NCBI GenBank assembly: GCA_030704615.1
Contig: CM060734.1
Location: 22,072,001 to 22,136,000, forward strand
DNA length: 64,000 nt
Source: Takakia lepidozioides
Lineage: Eukaryota; Plantae; Bryophyta
Reading direction: 5' to 3'
Positions within the stretch are counted from its first letter, which is position 1; each line of letters opens with the position of its first letter. Shown here in pieces: positions 7,571 through 34,900 of this stretch. The notes under the pieces are model-generated. The model did no database searches. It was not told where the DNA came from and was given only the letters and a program-made list of their open reading frames with translations. A program made the position numbers and the translations under genes.

Positions 7571-9920
7571 CTAGGTAGTGCTTGACTTTACACATACAAT
7601 TTTGGTTGTGATGGTTTGGGTGCAAACAGTTAGTGGTAGTGGGCGTGTAGGAGGTGCTTGGATCCAAATTTCATTCCTGATGTCCATAGGGTTAGTTAAT
7701 AAATGTCCATGCCGATGTTTGAGGCAATCGATAGGTGGATTTAGTGCAGGGTTGAAGATGGCTTTATGGCTTTTTTGGGTGGTCATGTAGTAGTTGGCTA
7801 AAGGAGGCAACAAATTTTTTGTGATTGTCCGAGGCTTTTTGTTTAAGAATGATAGTATACGTTTGGCATCTAGCCAGGTGGACTCAGGAGAGGATGATAA
7901 GTTGGTATCAGAGAGGGTATGGAAGAGTTGAAGCGTGAGAAGAGATGCCATTGGGTGGAAGTGGTTGTAGAAGCCAACAATGTTGCGTTGAGATATAGGG
8001 GAAAGGATCCTGGGTGGGGGGGGGGGGGGGGTGGAAGTAGGGACTGGTGGGATCGGTCTAGTGGAGATGAGAGATGGAGGGAGGGAAATGGATACCGGGT
8101 AGTGGTCAGAGTTGCATAAGCTGTCAATGTGGATGTGGCTTCTAAGATACGTAGGGATGGTGTCACGTGTATGGAGGTAGAATCCGTCGATAAGGCTTAA
8201 GGATAAGTAATTGAGGCCTCCTTGTCGTGAGTAGTGGTAATCAGATGAAATGTATGAGAATCGGTGTTGTTGATGAACTTAGCCCATACATGATCGATTG
8301 GGGATGGGGGTTTTGGGAGACCATTGAATGTGTGTCCAAGTAGAGCTATGTACTGGTTGAAGTCGCCAGCCAGTATATAGTGGTAGTTTTGCTGTTCGGG
8401 GTGGGAGACAGTGGAGGAGATAGTTTGTAGTATGTCTAGTATCAGTGCTAGATCTTCAATATGGGATGGCATATACAAGTAGATTAGTGTAATGGGGGTG
8501 AGTGCGGGTAGTGGGAGTTGTATAATTTGAAGGTGGGAGCGGAGGGGAATAGATACGGATATTTCAAGTGTGGTATTAGGAAAGTGGTGTGTTTTGAGGA
8601 TACCGAGTGCTACGCCACCTCGGGCTGGGGTGTATGGAGCAGAGCGACGTCTAAGGCATTGTGGTGCAGTCACGGGTGTACCGTACAGGAAATAGTATGT
8701 GGGCAGGAGTTTGTTAATGTATGAGCTGTTGGAATTATTGGTATGCAGTTTAGTTTCTTGGAGAAGAATAATGTGGGGGGGCGTAGAGTCTGTAAGGAGG
8801 TGGAGCAGACTTTGGATACTGGAGGCTAGAGAGCCCACGTTCCAGGTAGTGATGGTGAGAGTGTGGGGGCAGAGGCCAGAGTGAGTAGAGGGGGGATTGG
8901 GCGTAGGGACTGGTGTGGGGGATTGGGGTTGGGTTGTGGGAGGTACGGGTTGAGATAACATATGGGCTGGCAGTGGTCGGGAGACTAGAGTGGGAGTGAC
9001 AGATTTAAGGGTGGCAGAAAGAACTTCTTCAGAGAGGAAGGGGAATTTGGTGGTTATGTTCAGGTAGTCTTGGTTCGTGTTGGTGAGGGTAGCGAGATGG
9101 TCTCCTAGTTTCTTGTGTAGAGCACCGGGCTGTGCTTGTAACAGATTGAGCGATATGTGAAGGTCTGTTAGGCATTGGGAGGGGCCAGGTAGTTACTTGG
9201 GTGTGAGGGTAGAGTTTGTAACTTTTGCAAGATAGATGTGAGTAGGGAGTCTAATTGTGTGATCAGATAGTCTTCACATACGCTAGGAAGTGGGGAGATG
9301 GCGACAATGAGGGAGAAGAGAAGATGTTGGGCTGGGTGGGTGCTGTGTTTGAGAGCAAACATGGAGAGTGTTGGGTAAGGGTGCGGAGAAAGGCCAAAGG
9401 TAGGTATAGAGTGTCTGACAGTGTATTTGGGAATTTGGTTGTTAGTGGGTAGTGTGGGTAGGAAGGGGGCGAAGTGATCAAATAGGTGTCGGTAGGTATG
9501 CATAAGAGATAAACTGCTTGGGTAAAAGTAGAGGGCGTATTGATCTTGTGAGTCAGCGGGTAGCTGATTGACGATGTCATTAATAGGGGAGGGCCCTGGG
9601 TTGGGGTGGATGTCTCCGCATCTGAGCAGGTTGAGTGTGATATATAACTCTCGGTACATGGTGTCTGGCGAAGGGGGGTGGTGAAGGCGATGTTTGGAGG
9701 TTAGGTGGAGGTAGGAGTAGCGTCCATGAGGGCAATGGGGTGCGGGGTAGGCTCTGTGAGTAGATCATAGAATGGCTGGGGAGGATGTGAATATGTGGGT
9801 TGTGGTTTATTTATGGGATGTAAATTGGCCTGGGGGGTGAGGGTGGAACTAGTGGGTGAGGAGTTGTGATTTGTGTTTAATTGTAGGTGAGGTGGTATAA
9901 GGTAGTAACATGTATGCATT
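7571..9920 (-). mobile_element. 5' part of an APE-bearing LINE (probably the Dualen family): 2A-like motif, APE endonuclease, linker; degenerate
   Basis: ORF 9168-9659 contains LLRCGDIHPNPGP. ORF 8197-8961 has APE motifs ITTWNVGS, ILLQETKL, GGVALGI, LYMPS and LAGDFN. ORF 7571-7951 resembles the pre-RT linker. Confidence 0.8.
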
Positions 9921-11735
9921 TAGTTAGTGTGGCTTACACAGGAGGTGCACTGAGGAGATAATGGTACCATTGGATTAGCAATACAACAACCAGGGCCTCA
10001 TATGAATTACAAATTTTTTTATGCAAGTGGCCATTTCATACGAATTATCAAAGTCTTGAATACACATTTGCCTATGTGTGTGCAGTAGACCCAACCAAAG
10101 CACACCCAAAATATATCTAATGCAAAGCCTACAACTGCCTCACATGCACAAGTGCTGCATCTAAAAGCGTGTCCTCCTTAAGCCATTCATAACTTCGTGA
10201 GCACTTGCCCATGACTTGGCAACCATTCTATAGTGGTATTCAATGCATCAAAAGTCAAACCATTGATGGTCTTAAAACTGACCACCAACAAAATCAAGTC
10301 TACCCAAAGAGATTTGCCAATGTGTGCAACGGCGGGCCTCAAAACTAACCACTCCAAATCAACTCTGACCAAAGACATTCTCAAAGCTGAATACCTTCCA
10401 AATCCACTTTGACAAAAAAGATTCACAAAAGACATGAACGCGGGTCCCGGGCACCAGGGCCTTGAAACAACCCCTTAAGTAGATCCATGGTCGTCTTGCT
10501 GCATGCAGGTGAGATCACTTAGAACCTTAAGTTCATATTACGTGGTTGCAGTGGGATTCTTGTCACGGCAGGGGGACGTAGTGGGCAGACCACAAGGTGG
10601 GCAGTGTCCTCGCCACGGGCCTTGGCTCGACGCCGCTCCATGGCGATGCGTTGATTGTACCTGCATATGGGTGGAGCATTGCCGCAGTAAGGCGCCAGGT
10701 ACCCGTTAGGGGAATGGGGTGATTGTTTTTTTATTGCAGAATGCAGACGATCACCTGCCGCTACACACGCCTTGGTGCTCCAAATCGCATCGAAAGCCTT
10801 CTTTTGGGCTCGCTCTTGCTGTCGGAATCGCTTCTGGGCTGCCGCCTCTTCCCGCTCAGCAACTCGTTTCATCTTGGCAGCCATTTGCTCTTCTTTCTTC
10901 CGTTCACGTGCTTGGGTAGCTATTTCTTTGAGCCTGGTCTTCTGTTCTAGTGCAGCTAAGTAGGTGTCTGAAGTCATCATAATAGATTTACTATAATCTA
11001 TGATTGGTTCATTTTCATTTCTGATCTGCCTCTGTGTGCTTGCAGGTGCTTCTGGGAGAACACGGAACCGGGAGATGGTAGATGGACGTCCACCTGACGT
11101 CGGTGATGGCACCACAGGTACTCCTTCGGTCGTATCCACCTGACCTGACTCCTCCACGCTACCGCCTTGAATCGGCTGTTCCTGTTCATTGTCACTGGAT
11201 TCTATTTCGACGAAGTAGTGGTGATGGTCTTCCCGTGTCTCAGGTATAATATTGCCCAAGATCTCCTCGACGTGCAATTCAACTAACCCGTGTTCAACCT
11301 CCTCTGCTGGATTGTTGTCTTGGACTGTGGCATGTCACTCTACTGCAGCTTGTGGTGGTGTTGGCATGGTCTGCTCCTGTCATTCGGGCTGCGTGAATGC
11401 ATTGCTAGGGCCCATCTTTTCTTCCATCGCATGTGAATTAAGGGGCCAAATTCATGTGGATTAGAACCCCTTGGCTATGTTCTGACGTGTGAGTGCAGTC
11501 TTCAAGGCCAGGCTGACCCACTGAGCCAAGTCCTCCTTCTGGGCCCCTTTCCTTTGTTGAGCCGTGCTCCAAACGTCCCTGTACTTTCTGAATGCAGTTT
11601 TAAAAGGCTTGAACACAGCCACATCAAGGGGCTGCAATGCATGTGAAGTGTGAGAGGGAAGGGTGATCAGATCCAAACCTGATGATCTAGCTTGTCTAAC
11701 CACATCTATAGTGACATATGAATTATGACCATCAA

Positions 11736-17915: not shown

Positions 17916-19133
17916 ATCAAGGATCAATAATGTCGATTTGTCACACTGACCTCATTGCCCATGGCCTTTGCTGATTCCAGGGAATGAGAAATCCACTTGC
18001 TAAATAGTATGCCAGTCATCCAAGCTTTCTTTTGCATTGCCATTGTTGCTCCTGACTCGCACCTTGCAATGTAGTTCCTACTGAAGTGTTTTCCCTTGAA
18101 TATATAAAAATTGGGTATGTGACCACCTGCTACATTCATGCAGGTTAGTACGCTGAGCCACTCTCGTTGGTCTGGTGTAATGGAATGTACAGCTTTTGTT
18201 CCAGTTTTGGCAAGCACCACAGCTCCACCATTCCGTCCAGCTTGGCAGCCCGATTTATCACAGTTCCAGATCCTGCAAGCATCATAGTTAAACTTGGTAT
18301 AGATCAACTCTAGGTTGGTGTAGAAAGATTGAACGTTTTGAGGGCAAAGCCCTCTAGCCCTCCCAGTCTCCAGCCCTTGAGCCACCCTCAAGCTCAAATG
18401 TGGATGTCTCTTCCTGAACCATTTGACCCAACCCCAGCCCGGGATTCCTTGCTTGAATGGTGTCAATCGCTCTTGGGTTATTTCGGCAACCTTCAACCGT
18501 AACTGCGTGAGTGTAAGGGGATGTCCGATCTCCTGCATTCGTTCTATGTATTTCACCAGCTCGGCTTCTTCAGCAGCATCTAACGTGCCCTTGGTACCCC
18601 TCCGCCGTGTTGTTGTCACACCATATACATGATTTCGCAAACTAGATGCAGGTATTCCAAAAGACTTAGCGGTTGTGACCTCTCCTGGCGACCTTGACTT
18701 CTTTCAGAACAAGCGTGTGTAACTGGTGAAGACTCCACAATACCCTCACCCCCAGCAGATCCCTTGCCCTTGCCCTCAGACTCCGAGGAGGACTGCGCCT
18801 GTTCGGCGGAAACCTTTGAACGCAGCAGTCTGATAAGGTTGAAGGATTTCTCAGCAGAGGCTCTTGCTGAGACCATACGACCAGGGTGCGTTACTTCCAA
18901 CACCCTACAGTTCGATTCCTGATGGATCAAAAATTAACCAGTTAGTAACTTTCAGTAACTGGGCAGTCCCAACAGAAAGATGTTAATTGTCAAAGGAGGA
19001 CGGGAGGCCTCCCGTCGAAGGACGACGGGAGATCACCCGTCGAACGATGTAATTTATTTAGAATAAATCGGAACTTCCGACATCTCATACTTTCAACCCA
19101 TCATAATTTCAAGCATTAACCGAGCAAACACAT

Positions 19134-19790
19134 TTCAGGCTTGTGCTTGGCCAGAATTACATGAAGGCCACACAAGATTTTAGATTACATCGCCAGTGTG
19201 TAATATAAAGACTTGTGTGACCCTCTGTCTATTTGGCTGCACCTAGAAATGTCCCGTAATGAATGTTACTAATCACTTGGGTTGTTTCTAATCAAATAGG
19301 ATATTCAATGGACCTCTGCCTACTCACACTTTCCGCCCATCATCGTAAGCAAGAACTATTCAGGCTTGTGCATGCCAAGAATTACATGAAGGCCACATAA
19401 GATTTTAGATTACATCGCCAGAGTGTAACATAAAGACTTGTGTGACCCTCTGTAACTATTTGGCTGCAACCCAAAATGTCCCATAATGAATGTTACTAAT
19501 CAAATGGGTATCAGTAGGAATCGGCAATGTATGAAGGGAGGTGTCCCGTCAAAGGACTTAAACAAAAATTCAATATAATTTGGAACAACATCCTTATAAA
19601 CTATTCCATCTCACATATGTACGTACATACATACTTCCATCTCACACATTAAACCCATCATTTGAAGCAATAACAGAGGACTCATTTTCAGAGACTTAGA
19701 ATGTCCATGCCCACAAATTGATCCACAAGATCTTAGATAACATCGCCATTGTGTTAAATAAAGTCTTGTGTATCACATTGTAGGAATGTG
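19134..19790. repeat. Two near-identical and one diverged ~225-bp direct repeats
   Basis: TTCAGGCTTGTG...GAATTACATGAAGGCCACA.AAGATTTTAGATTACATCGCCAG...AAAGACTTGTGTGACCCTCTGT at ~19134 and ~19359; diverged copy near 19690-19780. Confidence 0.8.
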
Positions 19791-20380
19791 CATGCACTCA
19801 GCATGAATTTAGATAATCATGTGGGTACTTCCTCGCCGGATAAGACTCAAATAAGTATAGTGAAATGGAGGACGGGAGGTCTCCCGTCAATGGAAGAACG
19901 GAATATCTCCGTCAATGAAATTCTGCCAGCACTCACATTTGACCCATCATCAATTAATTAATCTAGGAATTACTCCAAGTTTCTGGCTTGCCTGGGTCAT
20001 TGGCAGGATCCGACCACATGTCGAGATAATTAGGGACACCGCTCAAGTGTTTTCCCTCCATGAGCACATATTTTGTGTACCTACGAACTCGCAAACCCAA
20101 TGCAATTCCCAACATGTCAATTCACAAAACATGAGAATGTGATGATCGCCGGCGACCATCACAGTCCTTACAGAGAGTGATTGCTCATGGGAATTCTACT
20201 ACCTCACAAGTACTACCCTGAAGAAGGTCTAAATATGATGATCGCCGCCGATCATCATATTTTCTTGAAGATTTCAGTTTCAATCGGGGAAATGTAGGAC
20301 TCAAACACAAAAGCAAAACGATGCAATTCACATTTCTGGGCGAAATGAAGATTTCTATGCAAAAGCACACAACAGTTTGA

Positions 20381-21160
20381 GTGATGATCGGTGCCGATCA
20401 TCACTTCCTTCCAGCCCTAAGATCACGTTTTGATGGACAACTAACTTTGCAATGGGGGAAAGATGCAGGACTCAAACACGAAAGCAAACAATGTGAACCA
20501 CATTTCTAGCCAAAATGAAAAATACTCTACAAAATCTTGAAGCACTGTAAGTGATGATCGGTGCCGATCATCACTTCTTTGCAGGAACAAGACTGACTGC
20601 GAAAAATAAAAATAAATAAAAATAAAAATGACCTCGTTGCCGATCTGCAAAATCTTGAAGCACAATAAGTGATAATCGGTGCCGATCATCACTTCTTTGC
20701 AGGAACAAGACTGAAGGCGGTAAAAATAGAAATAAAAATAAAAAACCTGACCTCGTTGCCGATCTGCAAAATCTTGAAGCACCGGAAGTGATGATCGGTA
20801 CCGATCATCACTTCTTTGCAGGAACAAGACTGATTGCAGAGGAAAAAAAAAAAAAAAAAAAAAAAAAACTGACCTCTTTGCCGATCTGCAAAATCTTGAA
20901 GCACTGGAAGCGATGATCGGTGCCGATCATCACTTCTTTGCAGGAACAAGACTGACTGCGGGGGGGGGGGAAAAAAAAAAAAAAAAAAAACTGACCTCTT
21001 TGCCGATCTGAAAAATCTTGAAGCACTGTAAGTGATGATCGGTGCTGATCATCACTTCTTTGCAGGAATAAGACTGATTGCTTAAAAATAAAAATAAAAA
21101 ACACTGACCTCGTTGCCGATCTGGAAAATCTTGAAGCACTATAAGTGATGATCGGTGCCG
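20381..21160. repeat. Tandem array (~113-122 bp period) of a 28-30-bp palindrome with A-rich variable spacers
   Basis: AAGTGATGATCGGT(G/A)CCGATCATCACTT at 20549, 20667, 20786, 20908, 21030 and 21143 (partial), plus 20381; perfect 30-bp palindrome at 20785-20814. Confidence 0.9.
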
Positions 21161-21308
21161 TCGAGCTTGTTTCCGCGGTTAAGGGTGCTCTTCCACGGAA
21201 ATACACTCTGCTTATTCCTGGGCGCGCGGTGACGTGGAGTGAGCCCGGTGACGTGGCGTGGGCGCAAGGTGACGTGGCATGAGCCCAGCTGCGCTCACGC
21301 GACCAGGC

Positions 21309-23866
21309 TCACGCCGAGGCATCCCTGCTATCAAGCGAACCTCGTGGAGTCTCTGCAAGCGATTTCACGGCTTGAATTAAATTTAGAAATTGAAGTGGTT
21401 GCTTCTGTTTTCCCGTCATTGGCTTCATTTTTGCGTCAAGGTAGGGGTTCCCGAGAGCATTCTTAAAGTGCACAAACTGGGCCTTGTTGATTTCGTACTT
21501 ATGTTTGATGGCGGTCCACTCCAACTTTGTGTATGGATGTCAGTTGTCCTTCGTCGGCTCCTTAAATCCAAAACCGACCATGATATCATCAATAATGTGC
21601 CTCCTCAACTTCTTACTTGCAATATCCTCTAGACTCAAAACATCGGGGTCAGACCCAGTGTATGGATGACGCATCGACACTTTGTTTTTGAGTAACATGT
21701 GGGCAACCTTCCAAATCTGGCTGTCGTCCAAACCCTGCAGTCGAGCAACGCTAGATCTTTCATGGGGATATTCCCTTTGGGGTCAATGAGCTCGCCCTTC
21801 TCCCATTTCATGAACACTCTTGTCCAGCAATTCCAGGTCCGATCAGAGGTGAACACAAGTGGCATTGCCTCTTTGTCGCTTTTCACATCCAGAATGGTTT
21901 GATCAGCTCCGACCATGAAATCCTGCACATACCAGCAAGTGTAGTTAACTACCACGGGAGGTCTCCCTTGCTAACTTTCACATTCAGCCAACACTTCCGG
22001 CTGACTTCCAGCTAACTCCAGCACTTCAAACACTTCCAGCTAACTTTCTACAAACACCTTCAACTGATGATTTAAACCAACCAAGAGGATGTTGACAATT
22101 GGTCACTCTTTCTGGAGTGTCTCATACTTTGTATTGCGGTGCTTCTCCATTTCCTCTTTCTGGTGACATTCTCGACCTAGAACAAAGTCAAACCTGTGTA
22201 CAGAAACACTTAAGTAACCAAGAGACAATCATATCATGAAGCATCATCCCCAACTTGAAATCTTGATGGTGCGTGGATCTCTTCCAGATCGAGAATGTCA
22301 CCAGATTGGAGAAAGAGAGAAGCACCGCAAAACAAAGCAGAACACATCCCAGATGACCTCAACGGGAGAGAAGTTGCTGGGACAACAAATGTGGTTGCTG
22401 GTGTGTGGGCGATGAAATTGGATTTCGATCGACTATAATGTAGACATCCATTGCATCGCTGCAGTGATAGAATGGAAAGAAAGGACGGGAGACCTCCAGT
22501 GGTCAGAATCACCTTCCATTGCTGAGTCTCAACCCGACGATGCTCATCATACTTCTGGGGCCGCTCCTTGTAATTGTAATATTTTCTGCAGTGACGGACC
22601 TTCTCATAGAAAGACGGTTCGTAAAGATTCTCCTTGTTGGGCTTGTTCAGAACCTTGGAGATAGTCACCAGTCGAAGCTCATCTGTCGAGTACACTATCT
22701 AAGTAGGCCATGTACGTAGCGATTTTATCATGACATCATTACTCAGTGCCGGATCCTCCAAGAGCTCCTGCAATCATTACAGTTCAGTTGATTAGCAGTA
22801 GAAGAGAGACAATCGAAAATGGACAGTGGACAAATACATGGTCAAATAGTAAGTAGAATTTCTCAAAGGTGAGTCAGCAAGGGAGACCTCCCCTGACCTG
22901 GGCTGCCATCAATGTATGTTGGCCTCCGATAATAAAATATGTCGCCTTCTGCTTTGAGTCAATTAGGTTGTACGCAACTAGCCTTGATTTAATCTCCAGC
23001 TTGTGCTTCTCACAAAGTGGTCGATAAACCATATGCTGCGGGGCCAGAAAACAGTGGTTGATGTCCACTTCCTGAACGTATTCAAATCCAAACGGGAATA
23101 TATCCTGGTATTGCTCGATGAGAGTCGTCTTGACCTTCTTCGCCTCATCCAGGTCGAAAATCTCGTCAGTCTTCAGGTGCCTCTTTTCTTGGCTATTCAC
23201 TATATCGATGGTCTTTCGTTGTTTTCTTCCCCCCTCTTCTTCGTCATCATCTCCATTTCCTTCTTTTGGCTTTCTAGTTTTTTTCGGTTTCTTCTTCGTG
23301 TCCTCCAACTACTTTTGCTCCGATTGGAGTCATTGTACCTCCAATTGTTGTCTCTCCTTAGCATTATTGTAGAGAATTCCGTCAAGGTACTCCCAGCTCT
23401 TGAGGATTTCCATCTCTAGGTCGTCTTCGACAACAGGGACCCTGAATCTCATCCGAATCGCAAATCCCATCAGATCACTACTCAGATTCATGGCATCCAC
23501 AGAGAACCCAAATACCTTCTCCCCTTTCCTGGCGTTCTCGCGGATGAACACAGCAAGGGTAACCCTGTTATCCCTCACGGAGTCCTCCGTTTCAATTCCC
23601 AACACATCACAACACAAAAGTGTTTTGTTTTCCGCACCGATCTGGTAACGGAAGATGGCTTTCTCTAGATTCGGGGAGTCAGCAACGTCGATACCCCAAT
23701 AGTCAATACTCCTCTTTAGCTCGTAAAAGCCATCATGCTTTATTGTGAATCCTTCAATGTGTGGATATATGAAGGAACCGGCCATTTCGGTGCTCATCAC
23801 TGCGACTGATTCCTTCGGAATCTCAGCACAATCAACAAAAGAACAACCCGCTAATATAAACACCAA
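21309..23866 (-). pseudogene. Spliced, degraded gene for a ParB/Srx-like domain protein
   Basis: ORF pieces 23330-23866, 22874-23308 (EVDINHCFLAPQHMVYRPL...TYFIIGGQHTLMAAQ, then a GT donor), ~22510-22720 (RTWPT*IVYSTDELRLVTISKVLN), 21635-21955, 21540-21731 and 21309-21524. IIGGQH resembles the ParB/Srx IIDGxHR motif. Confidence 0.55.
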
Positions 23867-24181
23867 ATAACAACCAACACAACGGTCTTTCCGAACCGTA
23901 TGGAGCTATATCTCAATTCAAGGACGGGAGATCTCCCGTGACAGCAATGAACAATACCACCAATAAGGATAATTCAAGTTCTCATAAACACAACACATAA
24001 ACAACAACATGGAGGTTTCAGAACTTCAATTAGTAGTTTATAAATCAAAACCCAGGGTGCTTCAAGTACCAAAGATGTACTTCAATACAGTGACGGGAGA
24101 CCTCCCGTGATCAGCTCACAAAACGCAACCCCACCTACACTTTCCAAACCCTAAACCTCTAGAAGCAACCCCACCTACCAT

Positions 24182-24889
24182 CTACGGTTTGCTAGAATCT
24201 ACATCAAGAAATTGCCCTATAGTCACACCACAATGCATTGGGCTATCTAGCCAGTTCTGATATGCACTGCGGATCTCTTCTCTCAGTTTCTCCTGCTTTG
24301 GATCCCTTCGAGGTGTCGCTGGAGAGTATCCAGGACTCCAAGAGTCGCTGTCCAAAACCCAATCAGGGAATATCTTGGAGATTTCGTCGGTTTCCATTGA
24401 GTTTGATGCCTGTGCACCCTGGGAATTTGATTCGGGAGTATACACATGTGCATCCAGGGTGTGCTCTTGTGGAGTGTACAGTCCTGGAGTGTATTCCGGT
24501 GAATCTGCTCGTATGTACACTGGGTGGACAACTGCTGGTATGTAAGTGTACTCTGCAGGGGTGTATACTGGTGAATCCGAAGGTACATATGAGTCCTCTA
24601 AAGGGGTGTATTCTGGTGAATCTGCTGGTATGTACACTGGGTGGACAGCTGCTAGTATGTAAGTGCCCTCTGAAGCAGTGTATACTGGTGAATCTGCTGG
24701 GACATAAGTGTCCTCTAAAGGGGTGTATTCTGGTGAATCTGCTGGTATGTACGAGTCCTCTGCAGGGGTGTATTCTGGTGAATGTGCTGGTATGTTCTCT
24801 GGGGCGACAACATTTACTTTGCTTCCACTGCAATGGCTTAGCTCGGATTCCTTGCCGTCCTCATCCACTAATTTCTGGATAGCGGACAT
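24182..24889 (-). CDS. Low-complexity protein with tandem (AD)SPEYTP/SPVYT repeats, 235 aa
   Basis: Open frame with about six SP(E/V)YT(P/A) units plus SPGYSPATP, encoded by 48-63-bp tandem DNA repeats at ~24470-24790. May be an exon of a longer transcript. Confidence 0.55.
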   Translation of the reverse strand: MSAIQKLVDEDGKESELSHCSGSKVNVVAPENIPAHSPEYTPAEDSYIPADSPEYTPLEDTYVPADSPVYTASEGTYILAAVHPVYIPADSPEYTPLEDSYVPSDSPVYTPAEYTYIPAVVHPVYIRADSPEYTPGLYTPQEHTLDAHVYTPESNSQGAQASNSMETDEISKIFPDWVLDSDSWSPGYSPATPRRDPKQEKLREEIRSAYQNWLDSPMHCGVTIGQFLDVDSSKP

Positions 24890-25599
24890 CAGCTCCTCAT
24901 CTTCTAGGTAATGACATCTTGGCCAACGCTTTGGCTGACATCCTGACCGACCCTCAGCGTGTGCAGTGCTGATTCCAGACTCCTTTTCAAATTGAAAATA
25001 ATAGGTCAGTGGAAGGGAAGTTACTTACTCTTTGGCGGATGACCTCATTCCCGGTCGACATTATATAACACTCTATTACGCTCTTGGATACTACGTCTTA
25101 AATATCACAGGAGGTCTCCCGTGACATTTACCTACCGCGACAATGCGTTTTATCACGGGAGACCTCCCCTAAGAAAATGCACAAGAGCGGTCCCATGACT
25201 AGCACGGGAGACTTCCCCTGACAAAATGCTTGGTTCACCTAATGCAATCCTAATGCAATCAGTTGTGGGAAGATACGAAAGTACATACCGTGAGCTTGAT
25301 CCTGCCATGGTGGTTGAAGAATAATCGCAGCAGCAATGCACCAATCAAATTACACCACGACACCAGCACGGGCTCGCCACCAGCTATCCTGATCGCCCTC
25401 CTGAACGACGACCGCACCACACAGCTAAAACTAACAAACAGAATCTTGAACACTACTAGACGCAACAAACAACAAATGCAGATCACCGACCCTCCCTTCA
25501 CTCCGTTCACTCCCTCTCAAGCTCTCAAAACTCGTGGCTCTAAGTTTCAGCAGGTTTCGCCGTCATGAAAGTGTGAGAGGGAGAATGAACCAGGGAGCC

Positions 25600-26700
25600 T
25601 CTCCTTTTATATCCAGGGAGGCAGATCCATGCAATACCTCGCCGTGGGTATGCGATGGTAGGCATGCCTGGTGCAAGTCCCAAGAACTGCCACGCGCCCG
25701 CCATGCGCGAGATCTAAGCGGCGGCTGCCGCATGAGCCAATTATTAGGGGAGGGCTCCCGTGAAACGGCGCCTGCCACGGCCCCCATTGGCGCGAGATTC
25801 AAACGGTGGCGGCCTGCCATGCGCCAACCATGCGCGAGATTCAAGCGGCGGCATGCGTAGGGCCCGCAAACGTGGCCAATCATATTTATTAGGGGAGGGC
25901 TCCCGTGAAACGGCGCCTGCCACGCGCTTGTCATGCGCGAGATTCAAGAGGCGGGTGCGTAGGGCCCGCAAACCTGGCCAATCATATTTATTAGGGGAGG
26001 ACTCCCGTGAAATGGCTCCTGCCACGTGCCCGCCATGCGCGAGATTCATGCGGCGGCGGGCGCAGGGCCCGCAAACCTAGAAAATCATAATTATTACGGG
26101 AGGGCTCCCGTGAAATGGCGCATTCAACTCATGAAAATGGAAGGTTCTATGCACTCCATCTGTAAATAGATGATCCAGATGCAACGATGCTTTTGAGCAT
26201 GCATGTGAAGGCATTTCCATAGTTAGTATTCCAGCACGTGGCGAGCAGGCAGGCTACGCATGTGCTGGAACGTCAGAGTACGAGACGCCGCCGGCCATAA
26301 TGCGGCGGCATCGGCATTAGTGAGTGCGGCGGCGGCGCTGCGGTACGCTACGACGAATCTTACCTTCCATGAATGCTGCGAGGGGAGAGCTCCCGAGGCC
26401 CGGCGCAGCGTCATCATGGTCATGCGACATCCATCGAATCCGACGGCTTGATTATATCTGGGATCTCCTTGGACGGTACCGATTATATTGATGTCGTTGT
26501 GCAGGTACATCATAGATGGTATCCATCCATGTGGCGGCCATGCATAAGTCGTACTGTCGGGTATGGGAGGCCCCCCGTCACAGTCATTATGGCAAGTAAT
26601 TAATGAAATGATCCCCCTTGCTGTACAAGCCTCATGTATGGGTGCGGTTGGCCTCATGCCCCAACATGCAAATGCGGGTCTATATAAGGGCAAGATCTTC
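25600..26700. promoter_or_regulatory. GC-rich putative bidirectional promoter with four ~100-145-bp tandem units
   Basis: Minus-facing TATA (TTTTATAT at ~25605) and plus-facing TATATAAG (~26680) flank repeats of GCGCGAGATTCAA...TTATTAGGGGAGGGCTCCCGTGAAA at ~25741, 25886, 25988 and 26091. Confidence 0.55.
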
Positions 26701-27338
26701 CCTCTCATTTCATTTAGTCTCGGCGAAGCCCAGCCGAAATGTGGAGTGCAGGTTCTGGATTGACTGAAGAGTGGTGGAAGGGTGGTGGAAGGGTGGTGGA
26801 AGGACGGAGAGTGGTGTTTCATCTCTGCATGTTTGTTAGTCATTCTCTATCAGTATTTTCCAGAAGAGTTACACACTAAACTCACGCAGTATCTGCTTTT
26901 TTAGGCTGGCACAACGAAGATGTGTTGTTCCATTAGACTTTCGCTTTGTTTTGTCGCTCTTTTCTGAATCTCGTTTATCTGTCTTCGTCTTCTCCAATTA
27001 TACCATTGAATATGATGGGAGATCTCCCGTCATCTTGAGCACATCCTTTCCAATTTGTCTGGAACTCTATTTTCTGTTTATCTTTTTCCGCCCATAGGAG
27101 ATCACAAAACGGGAGACCTCCCGTGATCCCTTAGTGTTATTAACATCTATGGTATGCATAAATTCTATCTTGCACAATCCAGAATTGTATTGTGGATTCT
27201 CACTTAAGGGTGAGGCAACTATAAGGGGAGATCTCCCGTCATCCTGCGGAGTGTTGCCGCATTTGATTTATTCATCTTTTCTACTTTTTTTGCTTCCCAT
27301 TTTTTACTCGAGGGCATAGCAGGGGAGATCTTCCGTGG

Positions 27339-30300
27339 TTGAAGATGGTTACCACCTGTGGACAGTTGTCTGTCGGAGAAGCCGTGAATTTAATCCAACT
27401 TGTCGGCTCTCAAGTTCCCAGAATTGTCGCTGAGGGTACATGTCTGAATACGTCTGGAGAGGGATTTTGTCATGGCAGACGTCTCTCTAGTAATTTAGTG
27501 AGCATCATGTTGAAAACCGTGATACATGGAATGGAGTCAATTAGCTTGCCGTATTCACATCTAGACGCGGAGACTCTTGGAGAAGCCCTGGGGACACCGA
27601 TTGTCTGGAAAGTTAGTGAAGTTGAGAAACTTGTGCTTGTCCGATGCTGGAGCGAGCACGAATGTTTTGGAGAATACAATACAGAAGGACAATACTGATG
27701 GTTGAAGGCGCAGGAACAAAAGTTTCACAAGAGACAACAAAAAAGAAGCGTGCCGAGTGTCAGAAAGGTGCACATCATATATTCGGAAGAGATACTTGGC
27801 GTAATTAGATGTGCAATCTTCTCAATGACGAGATGGACGTCATCGCTGAGGGACGGGTTGTGGCGTGTCTACCTGACGAAGTTATTCTCGGTGAAAACCT
27901 TGGGGAGGAGCATGTCGGTGTAATTGTTACAACTGTCTCTGGGTTAGCTCAGGATTTGCTAATGACCATTACGAAATGACTGCTTACACATACAAACTTC
28001 GAGACGGCCGAAAACTATCAGAGTTGCTCACAAAGTTTTATGAAGAGCACGAGTCAGACACGGAGGACGACCACCTCGAAGGAGTTAAGAAATCGCAGTA
28101 TAAAAGGGAGATGAGAACTCCAGGGGGAAGAAATTGATCCGACTCTTAAATTCGGAGTCAATTCAAGCAGTAAGCTCTGTGAGCTGTTGTGCTCGAAACT
28201 GTCGTCAACACTTCAGCTGGGAAAAAACTAAGGCTATCCGGAGTAAGTTCTTGGCATCTTCTTTTGATGCAAAGAGAGAGTTAGGGTTTGACATCCCATG
28301 ACGACTACACCGACTACCGGGTTATGGTCGTCATGCCTACCTTATAATGGAAGGAGTTGAGGTCTGTGAGAAGGCGTGGTGGACAATCCATGGGATCGGT
28401 AGGTCAACATACCATGGATGCAAGAGGAAGAGTAATGATGGATACATCTCGTCAATGCATGGAAACAGAGGAATGAAGAAACCCCGAGCAAAAACCCTGC
28501 AGGCCGAGGCGAATTTGTTATCGCTGATTTCCAGAAACAGTGACCTCATGCCTCATAAAATGAGAGGTATCGGAGAAGGAAGGCAAGATGTTCTGAAGTT
28601 GCTGCCGGTGGAGATGAATTGGAAAGAGCTTAACAGACTGTCCAATGAGGTTGGATACTGCTTTCCAACCCAATCCGATTCTGACTCTATAAATATTTTT
28701 CTACTTTCAAGGAGCGTATGTCACGGGAGACCTCCCGTAATCATTCTGCTAAGTGTGCTAATAGTCGATATCAAATCGTCAGCATAATAACTGACAGTCC
28801 ATTGATGGATCGTTCGGAGCGATTTTGTCCATCTATTTAAGAACGAAATTTTGTGTCTGTCGTTCTTTTTGCATCTATCAAATTTTCATATCTCTTGGAT
28901 GTAGATGTTGGAATATTCGATCTCAATTTCAATCTCCACGGGAGGTCTCCCGTACCTAATAGAATACCAACTCTATATATTGTTGACAATTGGATCAGGC
29001 GAACAAACGAATGGGTTTGAATGAATTGTCGAAGTCTGGAATTAGCAGAATTCGAACGAAACTTTTTGGGAATGTTGAGGTTCGGAAACCTGGTGGAAAA
29101 TTCGCGAAATGCATAGATTGTGAGATGTTCAAAGATCTTATCCAGAAGTCAATCAGTGGAACTGAGGAGCAGAGAAAGCACAAAAGGAAATTTGAGAGAC
29201 ATTTGAAGCATCAGGAGTCATGTCGCAGGCTTTATCATAGTTGGCGAAATGAATCAACGATGATGGGTGAGGAGTTTCTGTGTATTATACACGATAAGAT
29301 GGATCACTCAAAGACTGCGTTGCCCCGGCTCCTCGTAACAAACAAGATGACATCTGGTCTCGGTCAACTACCTATATCCCTAACAGGTATGGTGACTCAC
29401 GGCCATGGTGACGGTGCTTATGCTCAGTTCACGAACGAGTTCTGGCCAAGTGATCCTAACTTGACAATCAGCTCCTTGGCTCGTTGTCTTCGCGCTCTTG
29501 AGAAGCCCACATGCCGAGACTCAAGAGAAATTTTCGATCATCCAATGCAGAACTCATTTTTCGAAACTCTAATGAGGGGAAAGTCTCGATGTGAGAAAGC
29601 ACTGAAGCCTAGGGTATCCCAAGGCCCTGTTCGAGCCAAGCCATTACCCCGTCGACTATACCTGCAAATGGACAATTCTTCAAGAGAGAACAAAAATCGC
29701 TGGATGCTTGCTTTTTTTATCACTCTTGACGGCGAGAGGTGTTTTTGAAGAGATCCAGCTTGGATTCCTAATGGTTGGTCACACCCACGAGGATATTGAT
29801 GCATACTTTAGTTATCTGTCGAAGAAGTTGAAACATAAGAGCACATATATCCTTCCGGATCTCATGCGCCACTTTATAGACTCTCAAAACCTGTCATTTA
29901 TCCCTCAACTGATTCAGGAGGTCGCAAACTTCAAGAAGTTTGTGGATGGATACATTATTGATGGGAGCGATGCGCTAATCGGCACATCTGAAATGCACAT
30001 CTTCAAGTTCTATGTGGATTGTGACGGTGGGCCTGTAATGAAGTATAAGAAATCAGCAACCAACGCTGACTGGCTTTCGAAGCAGGTGCAATCAAAATGT
30101 GGAAGATTGCTGAGGACGGGAGGTCTCCCCTGCTACCCCAAGGGGTCCCGGAACCTGTTCCACTGCAGCCTATTTGGGGAATAAAGCCAGACGCCAGGGA
30201 AAAAAATGCCAATATTGTAAATGGCCTTTCGAAGTACCGCAAATTCTGGAGACTTGGGATGGATCTCGACAAGAACTACGAAAATATCATAAAGAACTAC

Positions 30301-30900
30301 GATGAGTATTGGAAGGATGTTCTTCTTGAACTTGCTAAGCCATTGCCTGAGCCAAAGGACAAGGTGGAGGAGGGGTTTTGGCCTTCGACTCTGTGGAAAG
30401 ATAACCATGACCGAGATGGGATTAGGGTTGAATGTGAGAGTCAAGAGGAGTCAGAGGAGGATGATCGCAACCAGCTGGATCCCTATTGTGGGCCAAAGAG
30501 TCAGAGACCTAAAGAGCCGCTGAACCCATTCAAAGATATTGAAATTGGAAATTTCGTACTTGTTCGACCACCAGACACAGAGACATATCCAGTTTGGATG
30601 GGTGTGGCAATCTCTGATGTTGTTTGTGACTGTTCAGATGAGAGATATCGGCAAGTCCTTCTGGAGTGGTGGAGACCTAAAGGTGCTGCAGCGGAGGATG
30701 TGGACAGGTATAGAAACTGCTGGGACAAAGCTTGGGAGTTCAATGAATCTGATCCACCAAAGTTGATACATACGAACAGTGTGGTGTGGACAATGCGACC
30801 TTGGAAGAACACCTCCAGCTCTAGACGTATTGGAAAGACCGAAGCAGTTAAAGCGAAAACAAATCTATATGCTGCGAACGATCAAAGTGAGTCTGTTTGA
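27339..30900 (+). pseudogene. Sola1-like/DUF7869-type DDE/D transposase gene, spliced, with stops and frameshifts
   Basis: CCARNC and GVEVCEKAWWTIHGIGRS; GT-AG intron 28650-28998 (phase 0); KCIDC, CIIHDKMD, LYLQMDNSSRENKN, FLMVGHTHEDIDAYFS; frameshifts near 29715 and 30085. N-terminal VAEG..HG..LPY..TLGEALG..IVW domain resembles CACTA TnpA-associated domains. Confidence 0.75.
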
Positions 30901-31140
30901 GCACAATGTACAGAGGTGCACGGGAGATCTCCCGTGCTAATTTGACGACAATATGTGTTAATGTTGATCTTAATGGTGATTGCCAAGATTTTGTGGGAGC
31001 TCCTGTCACAATCAGAAGTTGACCTTGAATTCTTTGTGTCGACCATTTGAAACTTTCAATTTCTGAACATCTATATCTCTAGCGATTTGAACCCTGACTG
31101 CCTGCATCTCAGTGAAAGTTTAGTTTTGGTTGATTGTATT

Positions 31141-31915
31141 TTACACACATAGCATGGGAGATCTCCCGTGCTACAGATTCTTGACTATTGCAGACTGACA
31201 TGATTAATATTCTCATTCACCATAGTGCTCGTTGAGTCCCAATTTGGTTCGTTATCTGATAAGGATATGTCGTGGTCCGAATATCGTATCTTCTTCCCTA
31301 GCGGAATGTACTTTTATGTGTCTATTTCAACGGTGGCCCCTTCTTGATCTGACTTTATAAACTGTATCCTCGCGATGTTGTTACTGATTTTCAGGTGTAA
31401 CACGGGAGGTCTCCCGTGGTATGTCACGTCATTTTTTAAATATTATTTACTGGATTTGTTTTTTATCTGCGGACAAATAGCTTTTGTTCTGATCTCCAAA
31501 ATTTTGAATGTTTGAATGGCCAGTGGATGTGAATGGTTGTACATTTTTTATTTGTTTCCATCTGACGGTTCCACGCATTTCGTATGTCGGAATGCCGATT
31601 TGGTGGTTGATGATTTTCTCCCTTACACACAGTGCTCGGGAGATGTCCCATGCTATAGTGACTTGACTATTTCTGATCATGATTATTATATTTTTCTTAG
31701 AGCTCATTGTCGAATATAGTAAGGATTCGCAAATATTTTCATTTTGTGAAGATGATGAGGATTTTGTCTGGTCCAAAACCTTCATATCTTCCATTGCGGA
31801 ATGTCGTTCACTACTCCGATTTTAACGGTGGCGCCTTATGACGCCGACGTTCTAAATTGTATTTTCGTGATTATGCTATTGATTTCAGTTGTAGCATGGG
31901 AGGTCTCCCCTTCTA
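31141..31915. repeat. Two diverged copies of a ~280-bp block, ~485-495 bp apart, each bounded by palindrome copies
   Basis: TTACACACA.(palindrome)...TGACTATT...GCGGAATGT...AACGGTGGC...(palindrome) at 31141-31418 and 31623-31912. Confidence 0.7.
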
Positions 31916-34900
31916 TGTCTCGACGTCTGTTCGGCATTTCCTGGATTCTTATTTGGTGTTTGGAGGGTGACAAATAACTGTTGTCTTGCCTTACAGTTTT
32001 AATTTCTGGATGACCAGTTCATGTGAATGTTTCTAGATCTTATGTTCTTTTGATTTGACGGCTCGACGCTTCTCGTATTGAGCACGGGAGATCTCCCCTG
32101 GTGGGGGGAGTCTCAAAGCACCTGCAGCAAGCTGACGTTGTACTTGAAATTGTATTTGACATGGTATTTGACCTTATATTTGTCGGTTCAATGCATTTCG
32201 TTTGTTAATTCTTGTCCTCAATGTGACAAAGATTTTTCTATCTCTTAATTTTCAATAATTCAAAAATATTATTCCAATGTTTCTATCAATAATTTTGCGT
32301 CACGACCCATTGTGGTTTTAAAGCTCTTACTTTGTTTCCTATATGATATTGACACGCATTTGTTACGTTTTCACGGGAAAGCTCCTCTCATCTTCTCTCA
32401 CCATTGTCATGTAGTAATCGAATGATTCGTTTCGCGTAAGATGCGAGAAACTACCTATCGAGTGCACGGGAGATCTCCCCTCCGTGAATATACTCACGAG
32501 CGATCAGATTCTCCTCAAATTCAACATAGATGTCTTGCTTGTCATTTATTTTGCAAAGGACGATGCTACTTTTCGGAGCAATCCGGGAAAATCCAAAATT
32601 GTAAGCTTTAATGCATTGTTAATACTGAATATAGTTTTTTTTAACATATTTATTAATTATTTACAATTATTTAACAAATGTCCAGATTTCATCCTTTTGT
32701 CCATATTTACTTAAAATGGTGTTATAGGGAGAGTGTGAAGGAGAGGGCTATTGTGCAAGAGGAAATCAAAAAGATGCTTGATGCTAGTGTGATTAAGCCT
32801 TCCATCTCTCCTTAGGCCAGTCCCATAGTCCTTGTAGGAAAGAAGGATGGAAGTACTCGCTTCTGTGTAGACTTCAGGCGCCTCAATACGGTCACCAATA
32901 AAGATGCATATCCCCTCCCCAAGATCAATGAAAGCCTTGACATGTTACATGGAGCCATTGTGTTCTATTCCTTAGACTTGGCCTCTGGTTTTTGGCAAGT
33001 GCCTCTGACTAAGGAAGCCAAAGAGAAAACCTCTTTTGTCTATAGGATGGGCAAGTACCAGTATGAGACTATGCCTTTTGGTTTGTGCAATGCAACTTTT
33101 ACCTTCCAGTGCCTAATGGATATTGTCCTTGGAAATTTGAGGTGGGAGTGCGCTTTGATATACATTGATGACATCAATGTGTATTCAGCCACTTTTGAAG
33201 CCCATCTTCTTGACTCACAACGTGTCTTCAACAGACTTAGAGTTGCAGGGTTAAAGGTCAAGCCTAAGAAATGTGAATTGTGCATGCCTGAGCTTCACTG
33301 AATCTTGGGTCATGTCCTATCCAAAGAAGGTCTTAAGCTTGATCGTGAGAAGCTTCGCTCTGTCTGGGAGTTTCCCATTCCCAAGGACAAACATTGTGTT
33401 AGAATCCTTCCTTGGCTTGGCTTCTTATTACCGGAGATTCATCAAACATTTTGCCATGATTGCTTTTGCTTTGACTAAGCTTCTGGCTAAAGATGTTCGC
33501 TTTGAATGGGGTACTTTCCAGCAAGTTGCCTTTGACAGGTTGAAGGTTGCTCTCACCACTGCTCCAGTCCTTATGTTTCCCAAATTTCACCTGCCTGCAA
33601 ACAGATGCTTCTGATGTTGCCATCTCTGCTATTTTGTGTCAAGTAGTTGATGGGAAGGAGCATGTCATTGCTTATGCCTCTAGGAAGCTCGACAAGCATG
33701 AAAAAAACGAAATTCTATCACTGATAAGGAGGGGCTAGCTCTGATCTTTGGTGTTAAACACTACAGGCAGTATTTGCATGGAAGCAAGTTTGTTGTTGAG
33801 ACTGATCATCTTCCCCTTAAGGCATTGCTTCAACCGCGTGAGTTGTATGGTAGACTGGCACGTTGGGCTATGTTCCTGCAGGAGTTTGACCTTGACATTG
33901 TCTACAAGAAGGGGAAGGATAACTCCAATGCAGATATGCTCTTACACGGGTTGACCCTCATGTAGGCAAGCCTATGGTGACTTTGGAGGACTTGGCTGCT
34001 CTTGATATATCATCTCCTAAAAGGCCCTGTTCTTAACCTTTTGTGTACTGATCAGCAGCCTCTTCTTTTACTCCTGGTAAGTTCCTCTGGGCTATGTCTG
34101 TGACAGAATCTGCATACACGAGACCATATGAACGCAGCCAGGGGGCAGGACACCAGGCAGTGCTCTATAGTTTCATCTTGACCTGCCTGTCAAATCGAAC
34201 AGAGGCCAAAGGAATCAAGAATGAACTGGAAAACCGACAAAATTCTATATTTAGCAATCTTCCATAAGAACCCTGAGACCTTCGCAGCCCTATCCTTTCT
34301 CCAGATATCTCTCCAAATGGACTTTCAATCTGCAGGGAGGGTAGGCAGATGCCTCCACTTAGAGTTCCATTTACTAGTAAAATTCAGAGGAGGCCTCAGG
34401 AGAGAATAAGCAAGCTTCACCGTAAACCCAAAAAAAAGGGATGTGTTTCTTATCCATCCAATGCCAATCTGCGAGGTCAAATTGCAACAACCGAAGAGGA
34501 GCAAATAGAAACCAGATGAAAGAATCGTCGTAATGCGCGAGGTTAACAGGGGGCATAGGATCACAAACACCAGAGATAACCGAAAATATCCTAATAGGAA
34601 ATAAATCGGATTCTTGATGTGAAGCGGGGCGGGGAGAGACCAAGGAGCCGTGCATAATAAACTTCAACCCGAATAGAGATTGAGAATCCCTGGAGATGGC
34701 ATAGAAGGCAAATAACGATCCACTGGCACCCCCTCCCAACCAAGTTGGGAGGGGCCTTTGATTGAACGGAAGGGAACATATAGAGATCCAGCGAGGGAGA
34801 ATGTTTGAAACGATGGTATCCCAGGCGTTTGCTTTTCTCTTCGATAGTGTTGCAGTAGCAATAGGCCTCGGGATGAACTTGATCCATCTAGCTTGGAGAT

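Follow-up and report, generated by a model that had tools for sequence, protein, structure and literature searches.

In Arabidopsis, the VANC21 protein of VANDAL21 is reported to recognise short motifs that are dispersed in non-coding DNA of its own transposon family; such motifs differ between related families and are not palindromes. TnpA, a protein of the En/Spm (CACTA) element, binds short subterminal motifs at both ends of that element, for end synapsis and promoter control. Accessory genes with a ParB-like domain are already known from algal transposons. The 21.5-kb element Sola1-1_Ec32 of Ectocarpus encodes, on the strand opposite the transposase, a protein of 1104 residues with a ParB-like domain and an N4/N6 DNA methyltransferase; its authors, who cite green and red algal cases, suggest that such accessory proteins form a class that binds and modifies the transposon encoding them (PMC12477816, Genome Biol 2025). 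In Bostrychia and other red algae, the Plavaka protein PAG3 joins a ParB-like domain to a 2-oxoglutarate (2OG) oxygenase, tandem inverted-repeat arrays lie beside its gene, and this ParB-like accessory protein is proposed to bind the arrays in its own transposon (10.1101/2025.02.11.637652; Curr Biol 2025). The locus described here comes from a land plant, Takakia lepidozioides (Bryophyta), and lies in a window of 64,000 nucleotides (assembly GCA_030704615.1, contig CM060734.1, positions 22,072,001 to 22,136,000 of the forward strand), to which positions refer unless another locus is named. From about 18937 to about 32725, this window holds one dead copy of a high-copy, ~13.8-kb, cut-and-paste transposon with a DUF7869 (Sola1-type) transposase on the plus strand, a ParB-like gene on the minus strand and 33 sites of a 16-bp palindrome. 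DUF7869 is presumably equivalent to Sola1, as in the label given in a first-pass annotation of this DNA. The best explanation, which we hold tentatively, is that in this decayed transposon the palindromes may serve as self-recognition sites for a dimeric protein of the element.

Sola1-1_Ec32 and the Takakia element, the latter presumably also of the Sola1 type, are both giant DNA transposons with an accessory gene opposite the transposase whose product begins with a ParB-like domain, and in a sister lineage of relatives (loci L022 and L002) this gene likewise continues into a methylase-like region. The Takakia element differs in its land-plant host, in the absence of a detectable methylase domain from the window copy and the moss-type copies, and in its cargo, which is an open reading frame (ORF) of repeats resembling the C-terminal domain (CTD) of RNA polymerase II, with NIF/FCP1-like genes in relatives; element-wide dispersed palindromes are not mentioned in the consulted passages of the Ectocarpus report. 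PAG3 is likewise an accessory protein with a weakly detectable, N-terminal ParB-like domain beside inverted-repeat arrays, but the transposase of its element is of another superfamily (Plavaka/CACTA), PAG3 is fused to the oxygenase, and its repeats form tandem arrays by the gene whereas the ~33 sites here extend over the ends, the intergenic region and introns. With VANDAL21 the element shares scattered, family-specific motifs in non-coding DNA, but there is no relation in sequence or fold to VANC21, whose motifs are non-palindromic. As in En/Spm, a large plant DNA transposon has a short motif repeated many times at each of its ends, but En/Spm is of another superfamily and has 12-bp units near its ends only, in place of true palindromes that are also internal. 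The first-pass annotation had presented the locus as a candidate new system, a claim that is overtaken by the ParB-carrying algal transposons published in 2025 (PMC12477816; 10.1101/2025.02.11.637652). What appears to be new, in the literature searched, is that the host is a land plant, that this lineage seems to lack a catalytic fusion partner, that the cargo is CTD-like and FCP1-like, and that the element-wide palindromes are specific to each lineage and occur also in relatives without a ParB-like gene.

The palindrome is almost confined to the element. With at most one mismatch, the core CGGGAGNNCTCCCG is found 25 times, always within 19001-32480 and nowhere else in the 64 kb, against a chance expectation of 0.09 from dinucleotide-preserving shuffles. 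When up to three mismatches are allowed, the 16-mer ACGGGAG-NN-CTCCCGT has 33 sites within 19000-32481 and a single match, with three mismatches, in the other 50 kb of the window (54780), and the half-site ACGGGAG is 66 times as dense inside the span as outside it. This bears out the earlier count of about 32 parS-like 16-bp palindromes spread over the span and nearly absent elsewhere. Most sites reach 18 bp (C/G-ACGGGAG..CTCCCGT-G/C), and the central dinucleotide is free (AT at 10 sites, GT at 8, AC at 7, GG at 3, GC and AG at 2 each, GA at 1). Non-coding DNA holds 32 of the 33 sites. Four are located in the left subterminal region (19000-19887), within direct repeats of 225-330 bp, and eight in the right subterminal region (30898-32676), where the spacing is 93-289 bp and six of the seven gaps measure 188-289 bp. 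The central region between the divergent genes (24890-27266) has 13, including those of a ~102-bp tandem array (25687-26128). The minus-strand gene accounts for three more, which fall in or beside its introns and downstream exons (two of these follow splice donors at distances of 3 and 12 nt), and another two lie in the stretch that separates the CTD-like ORF from the start of the ParB-like gene. One is at 27321, in ORF pieces upstream of the transposase, two are in the transposase intron (28723 and 28938) and one is in transposase coding sequence (30116). Elsewhere in the family, copies carry the palindrome consensus base at 22880 and 25213. With all strong sites inside the span and other copies closer to the consensus, the palindrome belongs to the element.

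Related lineages each have their own dispersed palindrome, of similar build. In the foreign loci L004 and L005 this is GTATCGGCGG-N-CCGCCGATAC, of 21 bp and present at 13-19 sites, and in L006 it is TATYGGGAGATCTCCCRATA. L007 has the palindromes ACTTGGTGGCCACCAAGT and CCTAATGGCCATTAGG, of the TTGGTGGCCACCAA type, L015 has ATTTGGTGGCCACCAAAT and GATCTAGTGGCCACTAGATC, of the TAGTGGCCACTA type, and L002 has a 20-bp palindrome in tandem. Such lineage-specific palindromes of similar build fit sites that co-evolve with a dimeric binder encoded by the element. The 8.2-kb element L004 encodes nothing but the transposase, and the sites therefore need no ParB-like gene in cis.

The transposase is readily apparent on the plus strand. 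Pfam DUF7869 (PF25273) matches the ORFs at 28990-29748 (E 2.5e-16) and 29708-30184 (E 4.3e-25), the two pieces scoring 60.3 and 88.9 bits against a gathering cut-off of 26, and these ORFs contain the peptides QMDNSSRENKN and GHTHEDID on which the first-pass annotation had based its spliced transposase. There are 130 homologous transposases with 36-57% identity, and all close homologues carry PF25273. An exon with a Cys-rich motif and a helix-turn-helix (HTH)-like segment (28104-28649; 42-47% identity to L004, L005 and L006 by tblastn) is followed by a phase 0 GT..AG intron (28650-28998) and then by the DDE (DUF7869) and C-terminal coding region (28999-30897), delimited by Pfam and by comparison with the uninterrupted frame of L006. 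A homologous intron is present at the same place in L004, L005 and L006, and each holds the palindrome of its own lineage; the transposase intron thus carries the local palindrome in four of the four lineages in which it is visible.

Both genes of the window copy are pseudogenes, a state that the first-pass annotation had overlooked. The ParB-like gene has three in-frame stops (23332-23330, 23311-23309 and 22701-22699), and the transposase has one (28299-28301) and two frameshifts (near 29.7 and 30.08 kb); this copy is therefore dead. The family is multi-copy in the same organism. When contigs of DNA runs were aligned to 21600-27599 of the window, one DNA run alone provided 608 contig pieces with 80-99% identity. 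In other copies the plus strand has G at 23332 and at 23311, and the codons there are CGA and CAG; the TGA and TAG of the window at these places are therefore copy-specific C-to-T decay. C-to-T change of a CGA or CAG codon accounts for most of the nonsense codons checked, as expected in methylated, decaying transposon copies; the stop at 3251-3253 of L002 aligns with Arg in homologues, and that at 1305-1307 of L022 with Gln. Every copy of the ParB-like gene for which DNA was examined has at least one in-frame stop. Contigs from runs X1 and X5 join 24150 to 26019, 22896 to 25150 and 23898 to 25510, which suggests internal-deletion derivatives without the CTD-like ORF or parts of the ParB-like gene.

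The limits of the element were set from the palindrome sites and from homology at the right end. The homology between L004 and L005, whose transposases have 48% identity to that of the window, ends sharply at the right, and L004 has imperfect inverted terminal repeats of ~45 bp, the left one 8.2 kb from the right one. The window has a homologous right end (~32725), with a terminal inverted repeat at 32677-32725 that contains two TGGACA motifs on the complementary strand and was placed by aligning it locally with the right termini of L004 and L005. Its left end is only weakly similar; AACCAG...TGGGCA at 18937-18985, just past the end of a pogo-like ORF, loosely resembles the reverse complement of the right end, and 18937 is probably the left terminus. 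The hallmark of Sola1, which has been listed for the moss Physcomitrella (PMC9033089), is a 4-bp AWWT target-site duplication (PMC3845634, citing Bao 2009). A clean AWWT duplication is not readable here (flanks AATT/AAAT on the left, ATAG on the right), nor is a clean 4-bp duplication found at L004 (GTAT/AGTA versus AATT/ATTA), all these copies being old and nested. Other copies, from which the first-pass annotation proposed to define both, give the inverted terminal repeats but not the duplication. On the left, the element is flanked by a pogo/Tc5 transposase fragment on the minus strand (17924-18930; HTH_Tnp_Tc5 and DDE_1) and, on the right, a Ty3/gypsy reverse-transcriptase fragment on the plus strand begins directly after it (32727). 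These two flanks are unrelated to each other and the region is therefore a nest of repeats.

The divergent minus-strand gene reported in the first-pass annotation is also present, its quoted peptides lying at 22877-23308 and from 22698. It starts at ~23796, and its first exon (22898-23796; family hidden Markov model (HMM), E 6.6e-36) encodes an N-terminal domain of ~150 residues, then a basic linker and then the first half of the ParB/Srx-like domain, which bears the motif IIGGQHT (YFIIGGQHTLMAAQ). After an intron (22897-22768), the second half of this domain is encoded at 22513-22767, where the TAG at 22701-22699 interrupts it, as identified by the family HMM (22698-22237, E 3.9e-12) and by alignment A3 of the family. 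At least one further exon lies downstream, at 21543-21970, with a change of frame. Its assignment is by eye, FMKWEKGELID resembling LLKWENGNILD of the exon (10936-11154) that follows the ParB-like exons in L007; BLAST gave no similarity between these two exons, and Pfam no match for the window exon. Just upstream of the ParB-like gene, also on the minus strand, is the CTD-like ORF (24185-24889), made of tandem DNA repeats that encode Y-x-P-rich units of seven or eight residues (ADSPEYTP...). These units (YTPLEDS, YVPADSPE and the like) loosely resemble the heptads of the RNA polymerase II CTD, with no Pfam match and no homologue in the foreign loci fetched.

Similarity to known proteins is barely detectable in the sequence of the ParB-like gene. 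An exhaustive phmmer search with the exon at 22877-23308 gave five weak fragment matches, and a word-indexed search with it gave none. A profile of the five fragments retrieved 64 proteins, mostly fragments from plant-associated metagenomes, only five of which (P0146, P0152, P0165, P0166 and P0173) span the whole domain. No profile of the ParB clan recognises the family, which has no sequence match in Pfam, NCBIfam, PADLOC or the PDB; the sole trace is to DUF1015 (E 0.043), over the GQH motif of P0165. P0165 is intact and was used for the fold. A first model, from an alignment of six sequences, had a predicted local distance difference test (pLDDT) score of 38.8 and was unusable; an AlphaFold model from a 24-row alignment has a pLDDT of 65.6, with 75-89 in the core. 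Foldseek found nothing significant for this model in the PDB, with Noc, ParB and SbnI among the weak rows. In a VIA-align search of 48,161 representative chains, the leading matches are KorB (Z 4.0), the serine kinase SerK (3.9) and Arabidopsis sulfiredoxin (3.7), and the other ParB/Srx proteins in the top 16 rows are SbnI, SspE, PadC, human sulfiredoxin, BrxU and pNOB8 ParB; all ParB/Srx matches cover residues ~10-105 of the model. A fold search of the ESM Atlas returned ParB_N, GmrSD_N/DUF262 and DUF1015 clusters, with a TM-score of 0.61 normalised by an 89-residue ParB_N protein. Although each score is weak, three structure libraries converge, not by chance, on one superfamily, and the minus-strand protein family therefore very probably has a ParB/Srx-type fold.

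By its sequence the protein is, nevertheless, not a canonical ParB. In bacterial ParB-parS, KorB and Noc systems, an N-terminal ParB/Srx fold likewise goes together with 16-bp palindromic sites in many copies, but the setting here is a eukaryotic nuclear transposon. In place of the IIDGxHR-type motif that the first-pass annotation cited for ParB/Srx domains, the family reads I-I-[D/G]-G-Q-H-[S/T]-I-x-A-A-K (alignment A3), so that Q-H-S/T takes the place of the arginines of GxxRxxA, the cytidine triphosphate (CTP) motif of ParB. Pfam found neither HTH_ParB nor ParB_C in any exon of the window, L002, L007, L010 or L022, and no C-terminal dimerisation domain; there is no gene for an ATPase (ParA partner) in the element. 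A divergent HTH may nevertheless be hidden in the full protein. The ParB/Srx identity given by the first-pass annotation therefore stands for the fold but not for the arginine motif, and an HTH was not detected. The first-pass annotation had also proposed looking for a C-terminal methylase, and here the sister lineage is of interest. In L022 (1464-2876) and L002 (3548-4879), the ParB-like gene runs on into a region of 470 residues with DPPW followed by D-I-F-G-N-G, which is the motif order of beta-class N6/N4 DNA methylases. Pfam is blank for this region, an Atlas feature search gave N6_N4_Mtase plus ParB_N clusters at only 0.82-0.83, and no homologue of it was found in the window, L007, L010 or L015.

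The ParB-like gene and the transposase gene are found together again, though not in every related locus. A 16-kb contig from a peat-moss metagenome, L010, combines a DUF7869 transposase with a ParB-like gene and with a gene of the NIF/FCP1 type (PF03031, above threshold). At L002 and at the locus L014-L019, a ParB-like gene is followed by a NIF-like gene, with no transposase within reach. In L004, L005 and L006 the transposase occurs without a ParB-like gene (by tblastn and, for L004 and L005, the family HMM). Linkage of the two genes in other copies, predicted by the first-pass annotation, is thus seen in L010 and missing from these three. The NIF/FCP1-like genes, at 9417-10310 and ~10414-10674 of L010, 8178-9267 and 10952-11236 of L002 and 16173-16676 of L015, come after the ParB-like gene in three foreign loci. 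Where their N-terminal motif is readable it is D-L-N-G or D-L-E-R, in place of DxDxT, so that the second catalytic Asp seems to be replaced. The window copy has no FCP1/NIF-like gene detectable by tblastn.

These observations can be brought together in a proposed mechanism. The element has divergent genes, a spliced DDE transposase on the plus strand and an accessory module on the minus strand, the latter formed by the CTD-like repeat ORF and then the multi-exon protein with the ParB/Srx fold. The palindromes, 16-18 bp with two ACGGGAG half-sites round a free dinucleotide, would be bound by a dimeric element protein in the arrays of the two ends, in the region that separates the divergent genes and within introns. 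Binding would label the DNA as the element's own, so that the transposition complex assembles on it, and would also control the divergent promoters. That a protein binds the palindromes, and which protein this is, we infer from sequence. The putative binder is perhaps the transposase, probably through its variable N-terminal region, a candidate that we place slightly ahead because the transposase is the only gene of L004, which has many palindromes nevertheless, and because the ParB/Srx domain is not the sequence-reading part of ParB. The ParB-like protein is a less likely candidate, and anything else is about as doubtful as the ParB-like protein. The ParB-like protein probably acts on the chromatin or DNA of the element, since the sister lineage fuses a methylase-like domain to the ParB-like domain.

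Several observations argue against this explanation. The HTH-like exon of the transposase and the TGGACA of the terminal repeats are conserved between lineages whose palindromes differ, so that this conserved DNA-binding domain fits the terminal repeats better than the palindromes. In L007, L015 and L002, palindrome arrays adjoin ParB-like genes with no transposase within 5-10 kb. Between L004 and L005, both decayed copies, the palindromes are 66% conserved and their flanks 76%, and constraint on the sites is not apparent in this pair. Finally, a search of run records found no run on record as RNA that contains the element.

The alternative that survives best, although we consider it unlikely, is that the ParB/Srx-like accessory protein itself loads at the palindromes, in the manner of ParB at parS, and coats or bridges the DNA of the element, for anti-silencing, for end synapsis or for modification of its own DNA. 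This is close to what the first-pass annotation had put forward. It is consistent with the structural neighbours listed above, from KorB, SerK and the plant and human sulfiredoxins to SbnI, PadC and pNOB8 ParB, and with the ParB_N, DUF262 and DUF1015 clusters that led the Atlas search, but the Z scores reach only 4.0 and the pLDDT of the model only 65.6. The positions of the sites are also suggestive, with arrays immediately upstream of the ParB-like genes in L007 and L015 and downstream in L002, and with the two palindromes close behind splice donors of the ParB-like gene. L010, however, which has a ParB-like gene, a NIF-like gene and a transposase, has no detectable repeated palindrome, and the coat is weakened by L004 and L005, which keep 13-19 palindromes of their own without a ParB-like gene. 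The DPPW...FGNG region of L022 and L002 resembles beta-class N6/N4 methylases, which are what ParB is usually joined to in fusion proteins of bacteria and phages, and the same self-binding has been proposed for the algal elements; against this, the family motif has no Arg residues at the GxxRxxA positions, no HTH or other DNA-binding domain was detected in the exons and, in ParB, sequence is read outside the ParB/Srx domain. A stronger form of this alternative is a true eukaryotic system of the ParB-parS kind, in which the ParB/Srx-fold protein would load at its own palindromes and spread or bridge, would retune or recruit RNA polymerase II with the help of the CTD-like and FCP1-like cargo, would so escape silencing, and would co-evolve with its site in each lineage; this we regard as improbable.

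Still less probable is that the palindromes are nucleic-acid structures or sites for host factors, for example hairpins in intronic RNA or single-stranded DNA (ssDNA), or decoys or targets of silencing or splicing. As ssDNA, the main sites fold into hairpins of 6-8 bp (-5.5 to -9.7 kcal/mol), and the element has a second, longer palindrome, TGATGATCGG-YR-CCGATCATCA, of 22-24 bp and in nine copies, one per unit of a ~120-bp tandem array (20127-21214), that folds into a 12-bp hairpin (-11.7 kcal/mol). Several of the main sites lie in introns or just behind splice donors, and each has two CpGs. The stems are short, however, any palindrome would fold likewise, there is no Rfam match, and a host factor would not account for palindromes that differ from one transposon lineage to the next while having a similar architecture. 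Least probable of all is that the palindromes are functionless and were multiplied by duplication of internal repeat units for, although many sites lie inside direct or tandem repeats (D5, D7 and D11; periodicities of ~102 and ~240 bp) and are no better conserved than their surroundings between L004 and L005, most sites share their 16-18-bp core but not the sequence around it, two sites that have degenerated in the window copy show the consensus base elsewhere in the family, and all lineages examined have palindromes of similar architecture, four of them in the same intron.

Three further observations concern palindromes. The ATCGG..CCGAT core of the second palindrome resembles the palindrome of the L004/L005 lineage. 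A scan of metagenome contigs for the 18-bp palindrome gave 55 loci, GC-rich overall and 48 of them with a single site (up to two mismatches); none of the 55 is homologous to the transposase or the ParB-like gene, they were judged to be chance matches, and the scan is not informative on the plant genome itself. The metagenome contigs L066 (9060 bp), L051 and L062 (GC 56%) have 5-12 dispersed copies of a ~36-bp palindrome that contains the core CGGGAGGCCTCCCG, and one ORF that weakly matches PhyH/2OG-oxygenase (E 0.001). They show no homology to the ParB-like gene or to DUF7869 and so probably form a separate, unrelated family of repeats.

Reports of ParB-like accessory genes in eukaryotic transposons have so far come from algae, and as hypothesis only. 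The same type of module is now found in a land plant, in a multi-copy family and with well-defined candidate binding sites. With a palindrome of its own in each lineage, the question of which element protein reads these sites, and why, becomes one that two recombinant proteins and a 16-bp oligonucleotide would suffice to test directly. If it is true that the sites control the expression or silencing of the element, plants would have, besides VANC itself, a second and independent mechanism of that type.

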